From Trichosphaerium sp. ATCC 40318 (taxonomy: Eukaryota; Protista; Tubulinea): DNA of 42,678 nt. The notes under the pieces are model-generated. The model saw nothing but the letters and a program-made list of their open reading frames with translations. It was not told the DNA's origin and searched no databases. Both the position numbers and the translations under genes were made by a program. This document shows, piece after piece, positions 24,064 to 36,700 of the stretch (the stretch's first letter is position 1; each line of letters starts with the position of its first letter). The DNA is taken from assembly GCA_038496445.1 (NCBI GenBank), contig JALMLS010000337.1, positions 1-42,678 on the forward strand. The letters run 5' to 3'.

Positions 24064-24501
24064 TTAGTTGTAGTACTCCTTGCGCAATTGTCCATTTGGG
24101 TAATACTCCCTGTACAGTCCTTTCATGACACCATTTACAATTCGTGTAGTTTTATGTAATTGTCCACTTGGAAACCACTCTTTCAATTCTCCATTCCCAG
24201 TAGTTACAATAGAAGACATAACACCATTACAATGCCAAGTTTTTGTAACACCCTCATCTTTTCCATCAACTTTATGACTTTCAACAGCTAATTGACCATT
24301 CAAGTGCCACTCTCTATACAACCCATCAAATGCACCATTAACTATAGAACATTCAGAACGAATATTACCATTACAGTGCCACTGTCTGAAAACACCTTTG
24401 ATTAAACTTGTGATATGTTGTTTCAAAGTTCCATTTTGAAACCACTCTTTGCTTTCACCTTCTTCATCTGTATGCCATTCTTCCACTATCTGACCACTGT
24501 T
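24064..24501 (-). pseudogene. MORN-variant repeat gene, 3' half (disrupted by LINE insertion)
   Basis: EWHxNGQL/GxYREYYPNGQL repeats; joins 38402+ in frame as ...RVWDNSGQIV|EEWHTDEEG... once the insertion is removed. Confidence 0.9.
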
Positions 24502-24837
24502 TTTTTTTTTTTTAGAATAAGAGGCAGCGCGCTAGCGCCTACTTTATTACATATAGATTTGTTACATTGTATTGGTTACATAATTTAGATAAATTTAAAA
24601 ATAAATTCATTGTGCAATAAGTTCCTTCTCAACAGTATACTGACTCAATATATAGATAAAATCATTAGGTGTGAATAAGAAAATGATTAAACGGAAAGAG
24701 AAAAAGAAAGAAAAAAGGGGGGTTGGGGGGGAATTAAAAACATAACCTTCGAGGGCCTATAGGGGCAAAATAGTTGGAGGGCCTATAGGGGCAAATTAGT
24801 TCGAGGACCTATAGGGGTGAAATCAAATGTTTATTAT

Positions 24838-25508
24838 TTAGAGCAAACATTTTGGAAGTACAATGTCTTTGAACTTGTGGCCACTACAACTGCCATTGAT
24901 GACACACATGTTTCTCTCATTGTTGATACTACTCGGTTCAAAGGTCATATGCTTAGCGTCAATGCATTCTTTTTCATGGCAGCGGTGGCTGAGGTCAACA
25001 ATGCTTCTACTCAAGCCAGACCAAACAACATATTTTTCATCACCTAAAAAACCTTCCTGCTCAGTATAAACAGTGATTCCAGCCACACAGTATCTTGCCA
25101 AATGCCCTGTCTTGAAATACTTGCCACCAATCTTGGCCCTGGGATAGCCGGAACAGTCTAGTTTCTTGTTTGCAGTGAGTACTAGACATCCACTATCTAA
25201 ATGAGTAAAAGTAATTAGTCAAACTTATTAAATCATTCGAGGTCCTATAGGGTCTAAAAAAAGATGATACCTGTTCTCTCTGCATTCCTCATCAACAATG
25301 CAAACTTAAGCCTAGCAAGTTCAAGAGGTACAACTCTCAAGTCATTGGCCAAGGGGCGGTGTTGGTAAGTGTACACTGGCTTTTTAAAAAGCAAACTTCT
25401 TCTTTCCATGATTTCCCGCAAACCTAGCTTGGTTCCTTCATAAGCATACTTTCTTGGCATGCACATGAGAGTTGGTAATTGTTCAAGAAGAGATCCCGGA
25501 TTGTCCAT
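24838..25508 (-). CDS. His-Cys box / His-Me finger endonuclease (I-PpoI-like, zf-His_Me_endon type), 198 aa, 2 exons (25508-25271, 25196-24838)
   Basis: 74-nt GT-AG intron (25270-25197, branch-like gactaat) joins two ORF-track fragments in frame: ...AERTDSGCLVL...SGYPRAK...GHLARY...DLSHRCHEKECIDAKHMTFEPSSINNERNMCVINGSCSGHKFKDIVLPKCLL. Spacing matches SHxCHxxxCxxxxHxxxExxxxNxxRxxC. Confidence 0.85.
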
Positions 25509-25644
25509 GTTGAGTTACTGTGTTGGGTGTGGTGTTTGTAGCTTTGTGAAGTGTACACAGTGTACTTAATCTACATTTTGTTACCATAACCAAAAACCAC
25601 GTGGTTTTTTTACAATAAACGTTTTATTTGTGCACAATTCAGCG

Positions 25645-25652
25645 CTTTTATA
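25645..25652 (-). promoter_or_regulatory. Candidate TATA box (TATAAAAG) for the His-Me endonuclease gene
   Basis: About 140 bp upstream of the ATG, whose context tcaacATGG is identical to that of the actin genes. Confidence 0.35.
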
Positions 25653-25904
25653 ATAAATACAGGATTTACGGGCTTTTGGGGCATAAGGGGGTAAAAAAAG
25701 TAAAAGTGCACGTGTTATGTGCGTTTAAAGTGCTTCGAGGACCTATAGGGGTAGAAAACAGTTTAAAAGCCCTATTGGTAAATAGTATAATGCTTTGAGG
25801 CCCTATAGTAATGTTTCGAGGTCCTATAGGGTAAAAAAAACAAGATTACGGTATTTGGTTTCAATGAACTATCCAAAAGTACAAAGTACACGTGTTATTC
25901 TAAA

Positions 25905-26110
25905 TTTAGTACACTGCCAATGGTGATGAGTAAAAACCCTTCGAGGGTCCCCCCCAAGAAAGAAAACCATTTTACATTTAGTACGCTGCCAATGGTGATG
26001 AGTAAAAATGCTTCGAGGGTCCCCCCCAAGAAAGAAAACCATTTTACATTTAGTACGCTGCCAATGGTGATGAGTAAAAATGCTTCGAGGGTCCCCCCCA
26101 AGAAAGAAAA
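25905..26110. repeat. 72-bp tandem repeat, ~2.9 copies, each with a TTCGAGGGTCCCCCC variant of the motif
   Basis: Unit tttagtacgctgccaatggtgatgagtaaaaatgcttcgagggtccccccaagaaagaaaaccattttaca repeated directly. Confidence 0.92.
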
Positions 26111-26217
26111 GAATAATATTAAATTAAGGACTACACACTAGGTGCGGTGCCTCAGTATAGGGAGCGCAAACGGCTCCAAATTTGCGAAGCAAATTAGGAG
26201 GGAACGCGACCTTAAAA

Positions 26218-26788
26218 CTATTGATTATAAACAGAACCTAATCTATGAACTGGTTTTGATATTCTTCTATCGTTAGTAGGTTGTAAAAATTTACTTAAAA
26301 TTATAGTACCATCAGGTAATATTTCATCTATTCCACTACCCACGACAAACGCTGGTGTATTCATCTGTAATCTTCGTAAGCTGTTTTGTTCTGATAATAC
26401 ATCCTTATAGTCCATCTGAACATGACATTTGTATCTATCAGTTGTCCATCTACTAGTCGTTTCACTTTTGTACATCCAATCTATATTTTTGACTGTTCCG
26501 TTGTACATGGCAATAATCATCCAATTTATAAACTTGTATCTGATTTGTTGTCCTGCCAACCACTTATTTGCTGGAACACCATGTTTAATGTCATTACGTA
26601 TTATCCAGGTTAATGCTAGTATAATTCCAATTTCTAACAAATGATGTACTGTCTTGCATTTATCTAAAGAGATCTTAAGTGATTCATCTGGTTTACAAAA
26701 GGTTAACAAATCAAATACTACTTCCATTATTTTACTAGGCACTGCCCAATCAAAGAAAATTTCTTCATGCTTTTCTGGAGGGAACGCA
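26218..26788 (-). pseudogene. LINE ORF2 C-terminal segment (zf-RVT-like region)
   Basis: After removing elements C1 and B: IRDIVWRFIMRCLPV|THKKDA|FPPEKHEEIFFDW...LTWIIRNDIKHG in frame; W..RN is typical of L1-clade ORF2 C-termini. Confidence 0.85.
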
Positions 26789-28764
26789 CAGGGCTGAAAC
26801 TAAATAAGGCTTTTTTTGCAAAAGCCTTTTTTTTGCCACCAAATACAGCCTTATTTTTCACCAAATTGCCTTGTTTTTGCCAAAAAAAATGAGCAAATAT
26901 GAGGCATTGCCTTGTAATTTTGGGCTTTGAAGCCTCATATTTGGACCAAATAGCAAGCAACTGGTTCACTAATTAGCCTTAAAATAGCCTGCATTGTTGG
27001 TCCAATAATGCCTCATTTTTTGTGCAACAATAAGGCATTTTTGCCCTCAATTTTTGGGCATAACCCAGGCACCATATACTCATAAAACAAGGCTTTATAT
27101 AGGCATACAATAGTGATTCATTTATTAAAGTACAGTACACAAAACACAAAAAACTTCAATGTCCTCCATGTGAAAAAAAACCTTTAGTTAAAAAAAAAAT
27201 TATAAAATTATTGGTATAATTTTCGCGGACTGGAAAAATGGTTTAAAGTACCTATACTCCTGTTGTAGGTGGATTTGGGCGCTGCGGTTCGAATGGCGGT
27301 GGTTTCGTTAGAATCCATAAAATACTAAGCGTGTGGTGACGGCGTCTATATAAAACGTCAGTAGTAAATGAAAAAAAATGTTTAGGAAGTGTTGGTGTGG
27401 TGGAGACTTACCTTAAACCAATGTATCCTTAATGTACAATGTGTACACAACCAATGCCTAATTGGTGCCTATAAATTTAAGGCTGGCAATGCATAAAAAA
27501 ACTAGGGCAGGCATTGCCTAAAAAAAACAAGGCATTGCAACAATTAAGGCATTGCCCAACAAAGCCTTATTTCAATGCCTGATTTTTGCCTTTTCTGCCA
27601 TTGCCTTTGCAAAATCAGGCATTGCCATTTTTGCATGCCTGATTTTTGCCATCAATGCCTGATTTTAAAAAAATGCCTTCATATTTAAGGCAAACAGGTC
27701 TAAAAATTAAAGTGGTATATACCAGTTTTTTTATGGTATATACCACTTTTTTCAACAAAATGGTATATGAACTGGTATATACCATTTTGAAATACCACTT
27801 TTTTTAGAAATTAAGTGAATAAAAAAGAGGTATATGGAAGTGGTATATACCACTTTTCATTCACATAATGAGACCTTCTAAAAATGGTATATGAAGTGGT
27901 ATATACCATTTTTTATGGTATGTGGTATATACCACCTTTTTATTGGTATATACCACTTTTATGGTGTGCTTCAAGAAGGTCATTAAGGAGCTTTTTGGTA
28001 ATGGGTTTTCTTGTTGAACGATCATAGACGTCATACATTGAACGGTGCGTAGGGACCTTAGTATATCATAGAATCTAACCAAACCAAGCTCATTCGAACC
28101 GCAAGACCTGATTCCAGTACCAACATTAAGGAAACTATATTGCAGGTATTATACAGATGTTCATGGGTACCAGACAAAGTTTTATTTTATTTTCGTTTGA
28201 TATACATTAATCGACCTCCGTAGGCCTTAGTAATTGATGGATTCAGGTGGGACCACTTTCATTAGGTGCGCAGCATGTTTTTACAGTAGGTACAGCAAGA
28301 TCATGGAGATGGAAGAATTTTCCAGACGCCCATAGTAATGTAACTGTAGTGGACATTGTCCAAAACTTGTAACTCACAAACTGTGTATTAAATAAAGTGT
28401 ATTTTCTGGAATTGCAGGTGTACCATAAGTAAGCATAAAGTGGTATATAAGAGTGGTATATACCATGAAAACTGGTATAAAAGTGGTATATAAGTGGTAT
28501 ATACCTAAAAAAGTGGTATAAAAAAGTGGTATATTTTTTTTCTGGTGAAAAAAAGTGGTATATTTTCTGTTTTTATACCTGTTTTTTTTGGTATATTGTT
28601 GGTATATTTGGTCAATATACCACTTTTTTATATTTTCGGTCAAAATATACACTTTTTTTGGTATATACCATAAAAACTGGTATAAAAAAGTGGTATAAAA
28701 GTGGTATATACCAAAAAAATGGTATATTTTTTTAGACCTGAAGCCTTGTTTAGTTTCAGCCCTG
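26789..28764. mobile_element. Non-autonomous TIR element B (~0.93 kb without nested element A), 3-bp TSD GCA
   Basis: TIR cagggctgaaactaaataaggctt / aagccttgtttagtttcagccctg; gca at 26786-26788 and 28765-28767; internal aggcattgcc-type repeats. Confidence 0.9.
27695..28740. mobile_element. Non-autonomous TIR element A nested in B, 1046 bp, 2-bp TSD AA
   Basis: TIR caggtctaaaaa / tttttagacctg; subterminal arrays of palindromic gtggtatataccac. Confidence 0.88.
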
Positions 28765-28782
28765 GCATCTTTTTTATGTGTA

Positions 28783-30728
28783 CAGGTCTAAAATTCTCGA
28801 GCTGTTTTTATGGTAGATACCATGGATTTGTGGTATAATTATACCATTGATTCCAATTTTATACCACAAATTCCAGTATAATATACCATAAATCAAAGGA
28901 TTTATACCATGAAACAGCCAAATTATACCATAAATATACAGTAGAAAGTGCGAATTTATACCATATTTTTTCACCTGAAAAAATGCATTATATGGTATAA
29001 TTCTACCATAAAACATGGTATAAAACACAGTATAATACCATAAAGCCTGGTATATTATACCTTAAAACTTGGTAGATTATACCACAAAACCAGGTGTATT
29101 ATACTGTGTAAAAACTGTTCTAAAAATAAAAACACATTTATTAATACATCTTTTTTTGTTTACATCCGTGACTTTAGTTTTGCCCATGTCCTTTTTTGCA
29201 GTGATCAAATAACCTTAAAAGAACAGATCGTACTTGCTGTAAGTGCATTGAATGGATATAGCATGAAACCTAAAAGAAGAGTTAGCGCCAGCTTGGTTTC
29301 TTGTACACAAAATAAATAGTCGTACAAAAATTGTTGTTTTATGGCAGCGCTGAGAATAACAAATGTCCTGCACGGTGAAGCCAAACCAAGACTAAAACAA
29401 AGAAATGAAAATAGCTACCAACCTCATCGGAAACGAGTTCTAGCGGAATAGTACCTGGTTGGGCGGCTAACACGTTTTGTTTTTTTTATATCACCTATTA
29501 AGCCTGTAAAACCTATGGCAAACAGCTTTAAAACAACTACTTTCTAGCGTACCTTGTGTTGTGGGCAATAAACTGGCTTAGTTTTATGCCCTGGCTTAGC
29601 CAATTAGTTTACAATATCACTCGTAAGGTCAACGCATGGGTGCAGAGCCTAAATGCTATCTGTTCCGCAAATGCGGGCGTTTGGTAGGAAAAAAACCAAA
29701 AAAATCAAAAAAATCCAAAAAAAACCAAAAAACTCGAAAATGGGTAGGCTCTGAAACAACTTTGCCTTATATCACTAATCGCGTGGTTTAACACACATTG
29801 GGGCATATATCAAGAATGTCAAAAAAAAATAAATAATTTTGCTCTTGATTTGGTAAATGAGGCTGTATGGCGTTGATTGAGTGTAAAAATGCGTATGGAG
29901 GGGAGAAAAAAATGAGAGCCGGAGAAAAAAACCTCCAATTGGAGGTTTTTTGCGAATGGGCATTTTTCGAGCGCTAAACGCGTTTTTGGTGTGTATACCA
30001 CTGTAGCGTTCTAACATGGGGTACGCGGAGTGGTTTCTTCCTCAAATACCATTAATCGGAGAAAGTTGGCCAATTTATCCCTAAAACGCCCGTAATTGGG
30101 GCGCGTTACCAGATCTCTCTTAAAACTGTTTTTCACACATTTATATGCCAATTATGTTCAATAACGGCTACTGTCAAAGCATTGTGTGGTATGGCGTTTG
30201 TGTAGGTCCATATGCTATTAAATCAAGTGCAGACCAAGTGAGCTTTGACTAACTTATACTTATACATAATACCACGGTATAATACCACATTTTATGGTAT
30301 AATTATATGGTATAATGCACGGTATACAATACTGTAAAATACAGTATAATACCATGGTATAATACTGTGTTTTATGGTATAATTATATGGTATAATGCAT
30401 GGTATAATATACTGTAAAATGTGGTATAATACCATGGTATAATACTGTGTTTTATGGTATATATGGTATATGCGTGATATATATATACTTTAAAATGCAG
30501 TATACCATGGTATAGTACCATGTTTTATGGTATAATTATATTCTATAAATTGAGATATGGTATAAACATGGTATAATGGCTGTTATACCATTTGTCCAAA
30601 AAACATGGTATTATACCATATTTTATGGTATAATTATATGGTATAATTATGGATTATACTGAGCTTGTACCATAAAAGGTGATTATACCATAAAATATGG
30701 TATTATACCATGATAATTTTCAGACCTG
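28783..30728. mobile_element. Non-autonomous TIR element C, copy 1, 1946 bp, TSD TA
   Basis: Ends caggtctaaaatt / aattttcagacctg flanked by ta; tggtataattatacca-type arrays at both ends; interrupts ORF2. Confidence 0.92.
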
Positions 30729-33702: not shown

Positions 33703-36700
33703 TTTTTTGGGTTAAGAGGGTTATTCTTATAGAAGGCGATACGCAGCTGGGTAATCTCATCTTCTTTAAACTCCGGATCGACTCTCTTTGCAATTCTCTT
33801 TGGTCTTTCTAGTGCCATATGTTGTTTAAGTGCATCAATAAAGGCTTGTTCGCGTATAACTTTATCCTTCTCATATTGATCGTCAAATTGTTGTATTTGA
33901 ACAGGTTGCATTGGAACATCTGGGTCACAGACAGTCGGTTGTTGAGGATTGTAAGGAGCAACAATCTTTCTTGGGCGCTTCGGTTGAACAGGATTGACAG
34001 CAGTTTCGTTCTTTCTTTTTCCCAATCTAAAACTTTCTATTTCGTTTTCGGAGAGAAATTGTACCGTGTCTGCGTATTGTTGGGCACTTCTGAAGTCCTT
34101 AGCGCTTTTAAACACCTTAAAAACCAGATGATGTTTATTTCTCTTGAGAACTTGGAATTTTTCAAATCCTGCGATAATCTTTGAGCACAAGAAAACACAA
34201 CCATTCGTCGGATAATGAAACGTTTCAGTTTTCCATCTTCGAAAGTCGAGAAGTTTGACTCCCATAGCTTCACAGAATGCGTTACAAAGAAAACGCATCT
34301 CTTTTTCTCCTTCCGTGATTTCGAAACCAGAGATAACTATTTTGGTCGAGTTGTGGGCAATAGTAATAACGTTGAATCCATCTTTCTTGAGATTACCGCG
34401 AAGTTCTTGGATATCATCTACAGGTCTGAAAATTATCATGGTATAATACCATATTTTATGGTATAATCACCTTTTATGGTACAAGCTCAGTATAATTCAT
34501 AATTATACCATATAATTATACCATAAAATATGGTATTATACCATGTTTTTTGGACAAATGGTATAACAGCCATTATACCATGTTTATACCATATCTCGAT
34601 TTATAGAATATAATTATACCATAAAACATGGTACTATACCATGGTATTATACTGTATTTTAAAGTATAGTATACCGTGCATTATACCATATAATTATACC
34701 ATAAAACATGGTACTATACCATGGTATTATACCACATTTTACAGTATATTATACCATGCATTATACCATATAATTATACCATAAAACACGGTACTATACC
34801 ATGGTATTATACTGCATTTTAAAGTATATTATACCGTGCATTATACCATATAATTATACCATAAAACATGGTACTATACCATGGTATTATACTGTATTTT
34901 AAAGTATTGTATACCGTGCATTATACCATATAATTATACCATAAAATGTGGTATTATACTGTGGTATTATACCGTATAAGTATAAGTTAGTCAAAGCTCA
35001 CTTGGTCTGCAGTTGATTTAATAGCATATGGACCTACGCAAACGCCATACCACACAATGCTTTGACAGTAGCTGTTATTGAACATAATTGGCATATAAAT
35101 GTGTGAAAAACAGTTTTAAGAGAGAAATCTGGTAACGCGCCCCAATTACGGGCGTTTTAGGGATAAATTGGCCAACTTTCTCCAATTGACGGTATTTGAG
35201 GAAGAAACCACTCCGCGTACCCCATGTTAGAGCGCTACAGTGGCAGACACACCAAAAATGCGTTTAGCGCTCGAAAAATGCCTATTCGCAAAAAACCTCC
35301 AATTGGAGGTTTTTTTCCCCGGCTCTCATTTTTTTCTCCTCTCCATAGGCATTTTTACACTCAATCAACACCATACAGCCTCATTTACCAAATCAGGAGC
35401 AAAATTATTTATTTTTTTTTGAAATTCTTGATATATGCCCCAATGTGTGTTAAACCGCGTGATTAGTGTTATAAGGCAAAGTTGTTTCAAAGCCTACCCA
35501 TTTTTCGAGTTTTTTGGGTTTTTTTGGATTTTTTTGGATTTTTTTGGTTTTTTTCCTACTAAACGCCCACATTTACCGGAACAGATAGCATTTAGGCTCT
35601 GCACCCATGCGTTGACCTTACGAGTGATATTGTAAACTAATTGGCTAAGCCAGGACATAAAACTAAGTCTTGACCAGTTTATCGCCCACACAACACAAGG
35701 TACGCTAAAAAGTAGTTGTTTTGAAGCTGTTTGAACCTAGGTTTTACAGGCTAGATAAAAAAAAAACCAAGATGTGTTAGCTAACAGGTACGATTCTGCT
35801 AGAACTTGTTTCTGATGGAGTTGGCAGTTATTTTCATTTCTTTGTTTTAATCTTGGTTTGGCTTCACCGCACAGGTCATTTGTTACTCTCAGCGCTGTCA
35901 CCACAACAAAACAGCAATTCTTGTACGACTATTTATTTTGTGCATCAAGCCTTTACTAACTCTTCTTTTAGTTTTCATGCTATGTCCATTCGATGCACTT
36001 ACAGCAAGTACGATCTTTTTTTTTGAAGGTGTCAACTACTGCAAAAGAGAACATGGACAAAACCAAAGGTCACGGATGTAAACAAAAGAATGTATTAATA
36101 AATGTGGTTTTATTATTAGAACAGTTTTTACACGGTATAATACACCTGGTTTTGTGGTATAATCTACCAAGTTTTAAGGTATAATATACCAGGCTTTGTG
36201 GTATTATACTGTGTTTTATACCATGTTTTATGGTAGAATTATACCATATATTGCATTTTTTTAGGTGAAAAAATATGGTATAAATTCGCACTTTCTACTG
36301 TATATTTATGGTATAATTTAGCTGTTTTATGGTATAAATCCTTTGATTTATGGTATATTATACTGGAATTTGTGGTATAAAATTGGAATCAATGGTATAA
36401 TTATACCACAAATCCATGGTATCTACCATAAAAACAGCTCGAAAATTTTAGACCTGTATAACAGACGGAGAAGCATACATAGAAATCGTAGTATTGAAAG
36501 GGAACTCCTTAGCCGTAATGATATGTTCACTTTCGCTCTTGATTACTTCATGAATAGCACGTTTAGCTAGATTGAACTTGGCTTGAAGATCATCGGAAAT
36601 GAATTGTTTGGGTCTAACACCTTGGATCAGATCTGGATAAATCTCGAGTTTAATAATCCACACGATTCTTCCTTGTTGAGCGCTTTCTTGTAATTGATTG

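Follow-up and report, generated by a model that had tools for sequence, protein, structure and literature searches.

Within a 42,678-nucleotide (nt) stretch of the genome of the amoeba Trichosphaerium sp. ATCC 40318 (contig JALMLS010000337.1, hereafter the window), an intact gene for an I-PpoI-type His-Cys box nuclease lies in the 3' untranslated region (3'UTR) of a long interspersed nuclear element (LINE). We consider it probable that this nuclease is the sole gene of a 1.36-kb transposase-less, Kolobok-like TTAA cassette nested in a palindrome of the LINE 3'UTR, and that the cassette is spread or restored by gene conversion triggered by the nuclease. The analysis establishes the family membership of the protein, the boundaries of the element, purifying selection on the gene, the presence of both intact and broken copies, the existence of LINEs that lack the gene, and distinct histories for the cassette and the LINE. 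To our knowledge, I-PpoI-type homing endonucleases are known almost solely from group I introns of ribosomal DNA (rDNA), and the one reported link to a transposon, KolobokP, concerns animals and always includes a transposase. In the amoeba, short elements flanked by TTAA and bearing inverted repeats form a family in which an I-PpoI-type nuclease, long kept under selection, is the sole gene, and an intact nuclease copy is docked in a palindrome common to every examined copy of a young LINE.

Copies are designated by contig, C297 being the window copy and other C numbers referring to contigs of the same genome (70 Mb, 642 contigs), whose sequence was read at 61 loci. The nuclease gene is on the minus strand, between the last open reading frame (ORF) of the LINE, which ends at 26218, and the LINE poly(A) at 24513-24500. 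Direct reading and scripted splicing gave two exons running from an ATG at 25508 to a TAA at 24840-24838 and a 198-amino-acid (aa) product without a single lesion, bearing out what had been claimed in an earlier note on this DNA. The complete SHxCHxxxC...H...E...NxxRxxC...C.GH...C motif described there was found in exon 2 with all its elements, and the candidate TATA box and the AATAAA after the stop were located as well (Table 1). When unspliced, the frame of exon 1 reaches a stop after 84 codons, so that the nuclease domain would have no start unless the predicted intron is removed.

Protein analyses were run exon by exon. Exon 2 (24841-25194, minus strand) scored 39.6 bits with the Pfam family PF05551 (zf-His_Me_endon), for which the cut-off is 27 (E = 7.1e-10), and aligned to positions 2-113 of the 131 in the profile; the paralogs matched it likewise. 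A profile built from 11 family members of the genome and compared with PDB returned I-PpoI as its sole match (E = 1.2e-5, residues 90-136), with S97, H98, C100, C105, H110, E114, N119, R122, C125, C132 and H134 among the residues matched. The His-Me finger match that the earlier note had set as a check was thus obtained. Alignment of the 11 sequences displays the exon 2 motif S-H-x-C-H...C...H...E...N..R..C...C.GH...C, and equivalents of the catalytic histidine (I-PpoI H98), the metal-binding asparagine (N119), S97 and E114 are all present. The corresponding residues S69, H70, E86 and N91 of exon 2 (S149, H150, E166 and N171 in the spliced product) show little or no variation. Among the eight Cys/His ligands of the two zinc sites, equivalents of C100, C105, H110, C125, C132 and H134 were aligned directly; those of C41 and C138 (exon 2 C3 and C116) are invariant in the family alignment and were assigned by position only. 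An AlphaFold2 (AF2) model of exon 2 reached a mean predicted local distance difference test score (pLDDT) of 79.5, and Foldseek placed I-PpoI and I-HmuI on top, followed by NFI and Smad MH1, with weak statistics (E 0.03-0.06, template modelling score 0.35-0.43). By its sequence, the protein belongs to the His-Cys box group, and the fold check is consistent with this assignment, not decisive.

The 79-aa region encoded by exon 1 gave no Pfam match and no confident model (AF2 pLDDT just 58.9); it is conserved among the paralogs. Relatives elsewhere are distant: an exhaustive profile search outside the genome gave 1362 matches at E <= 1e-3, the best at 4.4e-21 and none below 1e-30, and a word-indexed protein search gave zero candidates. 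A distant homologue, P0017 (170 aa), was observed on metagenome contig JGI 3300035016 (L062) amid many small ORFs, including SET-domain and PDDEXK genes; this contig looks like a large DNA virus or similar. Within the genome, at least 26 places match the nuclease domain, in several subfamilies, including a near-identical 132-aa type with three copies (C173, C1, C54) and, on C382 and C57, long forms (290-425 aa) whose tails resemble coiled coils. A LINE-like ORF situated 5' of a second His-Me subfamily (L028) was rejected, since it proved to mark the end of a distinct retroelement that has a poly(A) of its own.

The two-exon gene occurs in eight copies in the genome. Three are intact, namely the window copy, C76 (201 aa) and C408 (202 aa), and five are broken: C54 and C133 each by a frameshift in exon 1, C44 by a miniature inverted-repeat transposable element (MITE) of ~900 nt in exon 2 plus a 3' truncation, C19 by a 5' truncation, and C378 by a 5' truncation with its break inside the intron. 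Intron codon and phase (AG/GTA ... AG/A) are identical in all six copies that retain the intron. Six diverged paralogs, with 51-63% identity to the window copy in exon 2, lie outside LINEs; LINE ORF2 was not found within 6.6 kb upstream of C76 or C408, nor within 3.2 kb upstream of C19. The gene is not encoded in a nuclear rDNA group I intron, as the window copy sits in a LINE 3'UTR and the paralogs sit between ordinary genes. Ratios of nonsynonymous to synonymous divergence (dN/dS) range from 0.07 to 0.34 between paralogs, with dS of ~1 or more, at or near saturation, indicating that purifying selection has acted on the nuclease throughout a long divergence.

The paralogs also define the boundaries of the element. 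C54 (2435 nt), C76 (1709 nt) and C408 (2047 nt) are complete elements, bordered by TTAA at either end and tipped by inverted GGG...CCC, all with a TTAA target duplication and 5'-RR...YY-3' termini, and TTAA-flanked tips were also found at the left end of C44 and the right end of C19. The ends of C54 read TTAA/GGGTGC...GCACCC/TTAA. No second ORF is present within the 1.4-2.4-kb elements. C133 and C44 share 96-100% identity; the similarity sets in precisely at the GGGGG tip, and the flanks outside it are unrelated, a trace left by recent transposition. Relatives with identical tips and no gene were found at C77 (1.4 kb) and C160 (1.1 kb). The genome contains 64 occurrences of the ACCATTGGCAGCG box of the left end, many of them in short arrays, and 0-1 of a control pattern. 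Arrays of 3-4 such boxes, 65-190 nt apart and away from nuclease matches, are known as coordinates (C5:897603-897946, C94:15866-16216, C215:82684-83169, C228:15311-15552 and C273:28847-29088); they may be multimerised terminal modules or gene-less relatives.

Copies share a common layout. Along the gene's strand, a tip, a short motif, TTTACT, ACCATTGGCAGCG, CACGTG, the promoter region and a further motif precede exon 1, and the intron (with a motif and TTGACT), exon 2, AATAAA, one or more motifs and the other tip follow it. A 24-nt hairpin is found in the promoter region of C76, C408 and C54. The motif is repeated 3-7 times, always on the strand of the gene, and its variant is specific to the lineage: CCCTATAGGNCCTCGAA in the window, TTATGAGNCCTCTAA in C76, GGTATAGGTANNCTAAC in C408, C19 and C54, and AGTAGGCCCTCTAATTT in C133 and C44. 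In the window there are 7 matches to CCCTATAGGNCCTCGAA against 0 expected, all on the minus strand and inside 24748-25831; genome-wide, this variant is present only in the window and in one related LINE tail. As each lineage has its own variant, the motif suggests a putative binding site for the element's own protein.

These ends raise the question of what moves the element. In one explanation, the cassettes are plain non-autonomous cut-and-paste elements that derive by deletion from a TTAA transposon of Kolobok or piggyBac type, or are its passengers, and are moved only by its transposase in trans; the nuclease would be irrelevant to mobility, and the LINE copy would be an ordinary nested insertion that has been eroded elsewhere. 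The TTAA flanks and 5'-GG...CC-3' tips agree with the Kolobok rule (PMC9587614), gene-less copies carry the same tips, and the genome contains piggyBac-type transposases (at least 13 matches to PF13843). None of the 42 TTAAGGGNGCNG sites is close to any of 13 piggyBac matches, however, and PF12762 (IS1595-like), a proxy for Kolobok-related transposases and a weak test, gave zero matches in the genome. Purifying selection across synonymously saturated lineages is unexpected for a useless passenger. Moreover, the flanks in the LINE are TT/AA rather than TTAA/TTAA, and cassette and LINE backbone diverge differently, as described below. We regard this explanation as rather unlikely.

A DDE_1 ORF beside the C408 cassette was considered as a transposase partner and rejected, since it has its own inverted repeats and abuts the cassette TTAA from outside. 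It belongs to a pogo-like element abutting the left TTAA of C408 (L056:3700-5700), with a 560-aa DDE_1 ORF, a zinc-finger-like tail and inverted ends of ~45 nt (AGTGAAAAGTATAAAATGTCCC...). Two further arrangements of tips are known as coordinates. At C540:156-7159, a 7-kb interval lies between identical inverted TTAAGGGTGCGG tips, and it could hold a larger, possibly autonomous element. At C210:35015-35035, two tips stand head to head in a tip-to-tip 21-mer (TTAAGGGGGCTGCTCCCTTAA), like an empty LINE palindrome.

We then turn to the LINE. It is a non-long-terminal-repeat retrotransposon of the apurinic/apyrimidinic endonuclease (APE) type, with RVT_1 in two ORF pieces and a poly(A) tail at every copy; the APE is recognised in a 583-aa piece by motifs only (GDFN and a DH box), with zero Pfam matches at E <= 0.1. 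Its clade comprises four subfamilies, which share 76-99% identity with the window copy in the C-terminal part of ORF2. Thirteen LINE 3' ends were examined, and all 13 have TT-G(6-7) ... C(6-7)-AA at the same place in the 3'UTR. What lies between these arms varies. Nine copies have nothing there. C49 has three motif units; C111, of another subfamily, has a left subterminal piece and five motif units; C378 has exon 2, preceded by half of the intron (its 3' half), and three motif units; and the window copy has the full 1359-nt cassette (arms at 26101-26092 and 24732-24723). Empty palindromes are perfect, with 13-nt arms and a 1-nt centre in C359 and 11-nt arms and a 2-nt centre in the 83% subfamily. 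The ends of the window cassette align with the ends of the TTAA-flanked elements, indicating that the G and C runs correspond to the element tips. In the window these tips are G7/C7, flanked by TT and AA and not by a duplicated TTAA, and removing everything from the G-run through the C-run would leave TTAA.

Nuclease coding sequence is thus present in 2 of the 13 LINE 3' ends (C297 and C378) and intact in one. This bears on the possibility that the gene is an ORF3, the LINE's own second nuclease, with gene-less copies being defective deletion derivatives. The two LINEs with cassette sequence at the same position represent separate insertions, as their flanks are unrelated; C111, from another subfamily, retains the left subterminal part and five motif units, and the G/C tips are kept there in 4 of 4 LINE subfamilies. 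Against this, the 11 ends without nuclease coding sequence include C425, C111 and C547, in which ORF2 is open through 1114-1137 aa, and the LINE already has APE-type nuclease motifs. A TATA-like box, an intron and an AATAAA belong to the gene itself, and this AATAAA would truncate the LINE RNA ~330 nt before its 3' end; the gene also has paralogs outside LINEs. Largely refuted by the census, a LINE ORF3 is a most improbable explanation.

The earlier note had set the gene as either such a LINE function or a stand-alone nuclease cassette that inserted later, and had named the census as the test. Both LINE copies without the gene (11 of 13 ends, including C49 and C359) and diverged cassettes at unrelated loci were found, which favours a separate element. 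The stand-alone alternative is further supported by the three elements bounded by TTAA and GGG...CCC; its phrase "inserted later" is unsupported. Function as a LINE gene is not supported, yet a truncated cassette occupies the same spot in C378 and the G/C tips occur in every subfamily, indicating that the association between cassette and LINE is old or recurrent.

The window LINE copy is dead, in agreement with the decayed ORF2 noted earlier: two MITE-like insertions interrupt it (26789-30726 and 34421-36456), and its reading frame is broken at least once. C378 keeps a 535-aa ORF1 and an ORF2 open for 1028 aa up to a single TGA in the conserved C-terminal part (L059:3311-3832). The insertions in the window LINE are recent, with CAGG(G/T)CTGAAA inverted ends; the 2.0-kb one is flanked by TA, and two elements make up the composite 3.9-kb one. 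Their CAGGGCTGAAAC-type element is the one that interrupts exon 2 of the C44 nuclease (L048:1889-2797). An ORF at the edge of the 3.9-kb insertion (26727-26969, MNQLLAIWSKYEASK...) has a close relative on C374 (L044:800-1752), directly followed by another ORF with a weak His-Me domain. MORN_2-repeat genes adjoin the LINE in the window (24064-24486, minus strand) and lie near the C76 and C19 cassettes (L055:8839-9288 and L057:500-1800); they are probably merely an abundant gene family.

Next, the divergence of cassette and LINE was compared between the two LINE insertions that carry nuclease sequence. Between C297 and C378, the LINE differs at 20 of 5474 positions (0.37%) and the cassette at 14 of 515 (2.7%), a significant difference for this one pair (Fisher p = 2.8e-7). 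All 14 cassette mismatches fall inside 24750-25084. The motif array of C111 is 91% identical to that of the window versus 82% for the adjoining LINE 3'UTR, which is suggestive of exchange on small numbers. At positions 24750 and 24803 of the 3' motif array, C49 has the base of C378 and C297 a different one; both are CpG sites, and parallel mutation there is possible. The contents of the palindrome appear to change and to be exchanged faster than the LINE evolves, which fits DNA-level copying between copies; template switching in the course of reverse transcription or a locally raised mutation rate may also account for it.

How could a nuclease gene be maintained in such an element? In the explanation that we favour, the transposase-less Kolobok-like cassette, the gene would be transcribed from its own promoter and spliced, and its product would be a zinc-stabilised, I-PpoI-like dimeric nuclease. 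The enzyme would introduce a site-specific double-strand break in a sequence of the family, be it the tips of the element, its repeated motif or the palindrome of an empty LINE, and repair off a filled copy would spread or restore the cassette by gene conversion. To jump to new TTAA sites, the cassette would need a transposase in trans, and the LINE would passively transport the cassette or its stumps to new loci.

The choice of target leads to two further explanations. I-PpoI leaves 4-nt 3' TTAA overhangs (PMC9587614), and the abutted tips, GCACCC-TTAA-GGGTGC, form a perfect palindrome resembling an I-PpoI half-site, implying that the enzyme may act at the tips. A nuclease-only transposon, in which the 4-nt staggered cut at TTAA, at donor ends and target alike, is the work of the His-Cys box enzyme so that no transposase is needed, would accord with these features and with the lack of a transposase inside any complete cassette copy. 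It would also demand strand transfer, which is not known for a His-Me nuclease, and an unusual repair route for a target duplication from 3' overhangs, and it takes the absence of a partner from an incomplete search; we consider it very improbable. Alternatively, the cassette might be a protein-guided homing element with the G7/C7 palindrome in the 3'UTR of an active LINE as its homing site. The nuclease would cut empty palindromes, repair off a filled copy would install the cassette, often only partly, and LINE retrotransposition would spread new sites. A stronger form would have the same enzyme also cut TTAA for jumps to new sites, with no transposase existing. We consider homing to the palindrome unlikely.

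Several points weigh against the transposase-less cassette restored by gene conversion. No autonomous partner was found for it, and the genome has at least 13 piggyBac-type transposase matches. The link of the nuclease to the motifs or the palindrome is one that we only infer, from sequence. The TT/AA flanks in the LINE imply that the mode of entry there may differ from that of the other copies. The excess divergence consists of 14 differences within a span of 335 nt, of which two fall on CpG sites shared with C49, and may reflect a local mutation hotspot. Finally, deletion variants could arise by slippage or template switching of reverse transcriptase between direct motif repeats, with no nuclease involved.

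Table 1. Features of the nuclease cassette and the surrounding LINE sequence in the window, in the order of transcription of the gene
Feature	Position	Strand	Evidence or conservation
LINE ORF2, C-terminal part; last LINE ORF (stop 26218-26220)	26218-26742	-	99% identity in C49, C359 and C378; 76-83% in three other subfamilies
LINE 3'UTR, from ORF2 stop to left palindrome arm	26102-26217	-	100% identity in C378, C49 and C359; 82-83% in other subfamilies
Left palindrome arm = left tip of cassette, TTGGGGGGGA	26092-26101	-	Perfect 10-nt pair, 1359 nt from right arm; aligns with TTAA/GGG left ends of paralogs
72-nt unit, 3.0 tandem repeats, each with G-run, CTCGAAG half-motif, TTTACT and ACCATTGGCAGCG box	25897-26110	-	96% matches; aligns with left ends of C76, C408, C44 and C54
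Three upstream copies of CCCTATAGGNCCTCGAA (25815-25831, 25794-25809, 25734-25750)	25734-25831	-	Motif search
Candidate TATA box, TATAAAAG, ~140 nt 5' of ATG	25645-25652	-	Direct reading; putative function
Exon 1, 79 codons + 1 base; N-terminal region without Pfam match	25271-25508	-	50-56% identity in C76, C408 and C44
Predicted spliceosomal-type intron, 74 nt, GT..AG, phase 1	25197-25270	-	One motif copy (25236-25252) and TTGACT box inside
Exon 2, complete His-Cys box / His-Me finger nuclease domain and stop codon	24838-25196	-	Pfam, profile, AF2/Foldseek
AATAAA poly(A) signal of nuclease gene, directly past stop	24830-24835	-	Direct reading; AATAAA at or just after stop in paralogs too
Right subterminal array, three tandem 26-nt motif-bearing units	24748-24817	-	C49 (3 units) and C111 (5 units), both LINE copies, have it without the gene
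Right palindrome arm = right tip of cassette, TCCCCCCCAA	24723-24732	-	Aligns with ...CTGC(A/C)CCC/TTAA right ends of C54 and C19
LINE 3' tail with own AATAAA and poly(A) (24513-24500)	24500-24722	-	231/232 bases identical to C378

What is new here is the census of the LINE palindrome as a docking site and the contrast in divergence between cassette and LINE. The system offers a concrete test of protein-guided homing via a repeated landing site, and of the use of a nuclease to a transposon. In addition, the enzymes are candidate new long-site nucleases, and the repeated motif of each lineage may mark its target.

The cassettes are neither group I intron homing genes nor a LINE ORF3. Dualen/RandI-type LINEs combine an APE with a restriction-like endonuclease, and there the second nuclease is a domain of ORF2 present in all copies. 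The window LINE resembles them as a non-LTR retrotransposon that physically bears a second nuclease coding sequence; unlike theirs, this nuclease is encoded by a separate, intron-containing gene, found in 1-2 of 13 copies and belonging to another element family. The nuclear rDNA group I intron genes (I-PpoI, I-DirI and I-DsqI; PMC9548176) share with the cassette gene the nuclease family, the catalytic His/Asn, the two zinc sites and an amoebozoan setting. The cassette gene differs in being free-standing, with its own upstream region, inside an element with inverted-repeat tips, multi-copy and dispersed, and its product has an extra 79-aa N-terminal region without known family. Since myxomycete His-Cys box genes carry small spliceosomal introns and poly(A) (PMC9548176), the predicted splicing and own transcription of the cassette gene have a precedent.

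In our literature searches, a His-Cys box nuclease was not found in any element that lacks a transposase, nor in any that resides in a LINE. The closest counterpart is KolobokP (Kojima and Bao 2022), in which a His-Cys box nuclease is paired with a TTAA transposon; reports of it come from seven animal phyla only, it contains direct repeats internally and its terminal modules are multimerised, and a role of its nuclease in repeat-directed recombination has been proposed (PMC9587614). KolobokP and the cassettes are alike in TTAA flanks, RR...YY tips, a His-Cys box nuclease and repeat modules. By contrast, the DDD/E transposase is in no copy here, and KolobokP's lengthy direct repeats at the termini (~450 or 660 bp, with inverted tips of their own) compare with just 17-72-nt units in the cassettes (17-26-nt motif units and the 72-nt unit in three tandem repeats). 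The cassettes also have an amoeba host, a spliceosomal-type intron, and one copy in a LINE palindrome without TTAA duplication. The earlier note had raised the possibility of a derivative of a KolobokP-type element; the Kolobok-like ends (TTAA, 5'-GG..CC-3') speak for it, whereas the missing transposase, the missing long terminal direct repeats and the restriction of KolobokP to animals (PMC9587614) do not.

The proposed restoration by gene conversion is, in concept, like the restorative homing of OMEGA/TnpB/Fanzor systems, in which a transposon-borne nuclease cuts the empty site and repair reinstates the element (PMC13565253). It would differ in that the cassette has no guide RNA and that the repeated target would be the LINE 3'UTR palindrome. 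According to a 2026 review, a repeated target is the only setting in which a transposon could be served by a protein-guided homing enzyme, and no case had been reported (PMC13565253). If homing to the palindrome is true, the cassette would represent this theoretically possible case, a classical homing endonuclease serving a mobile element in a repeated target.

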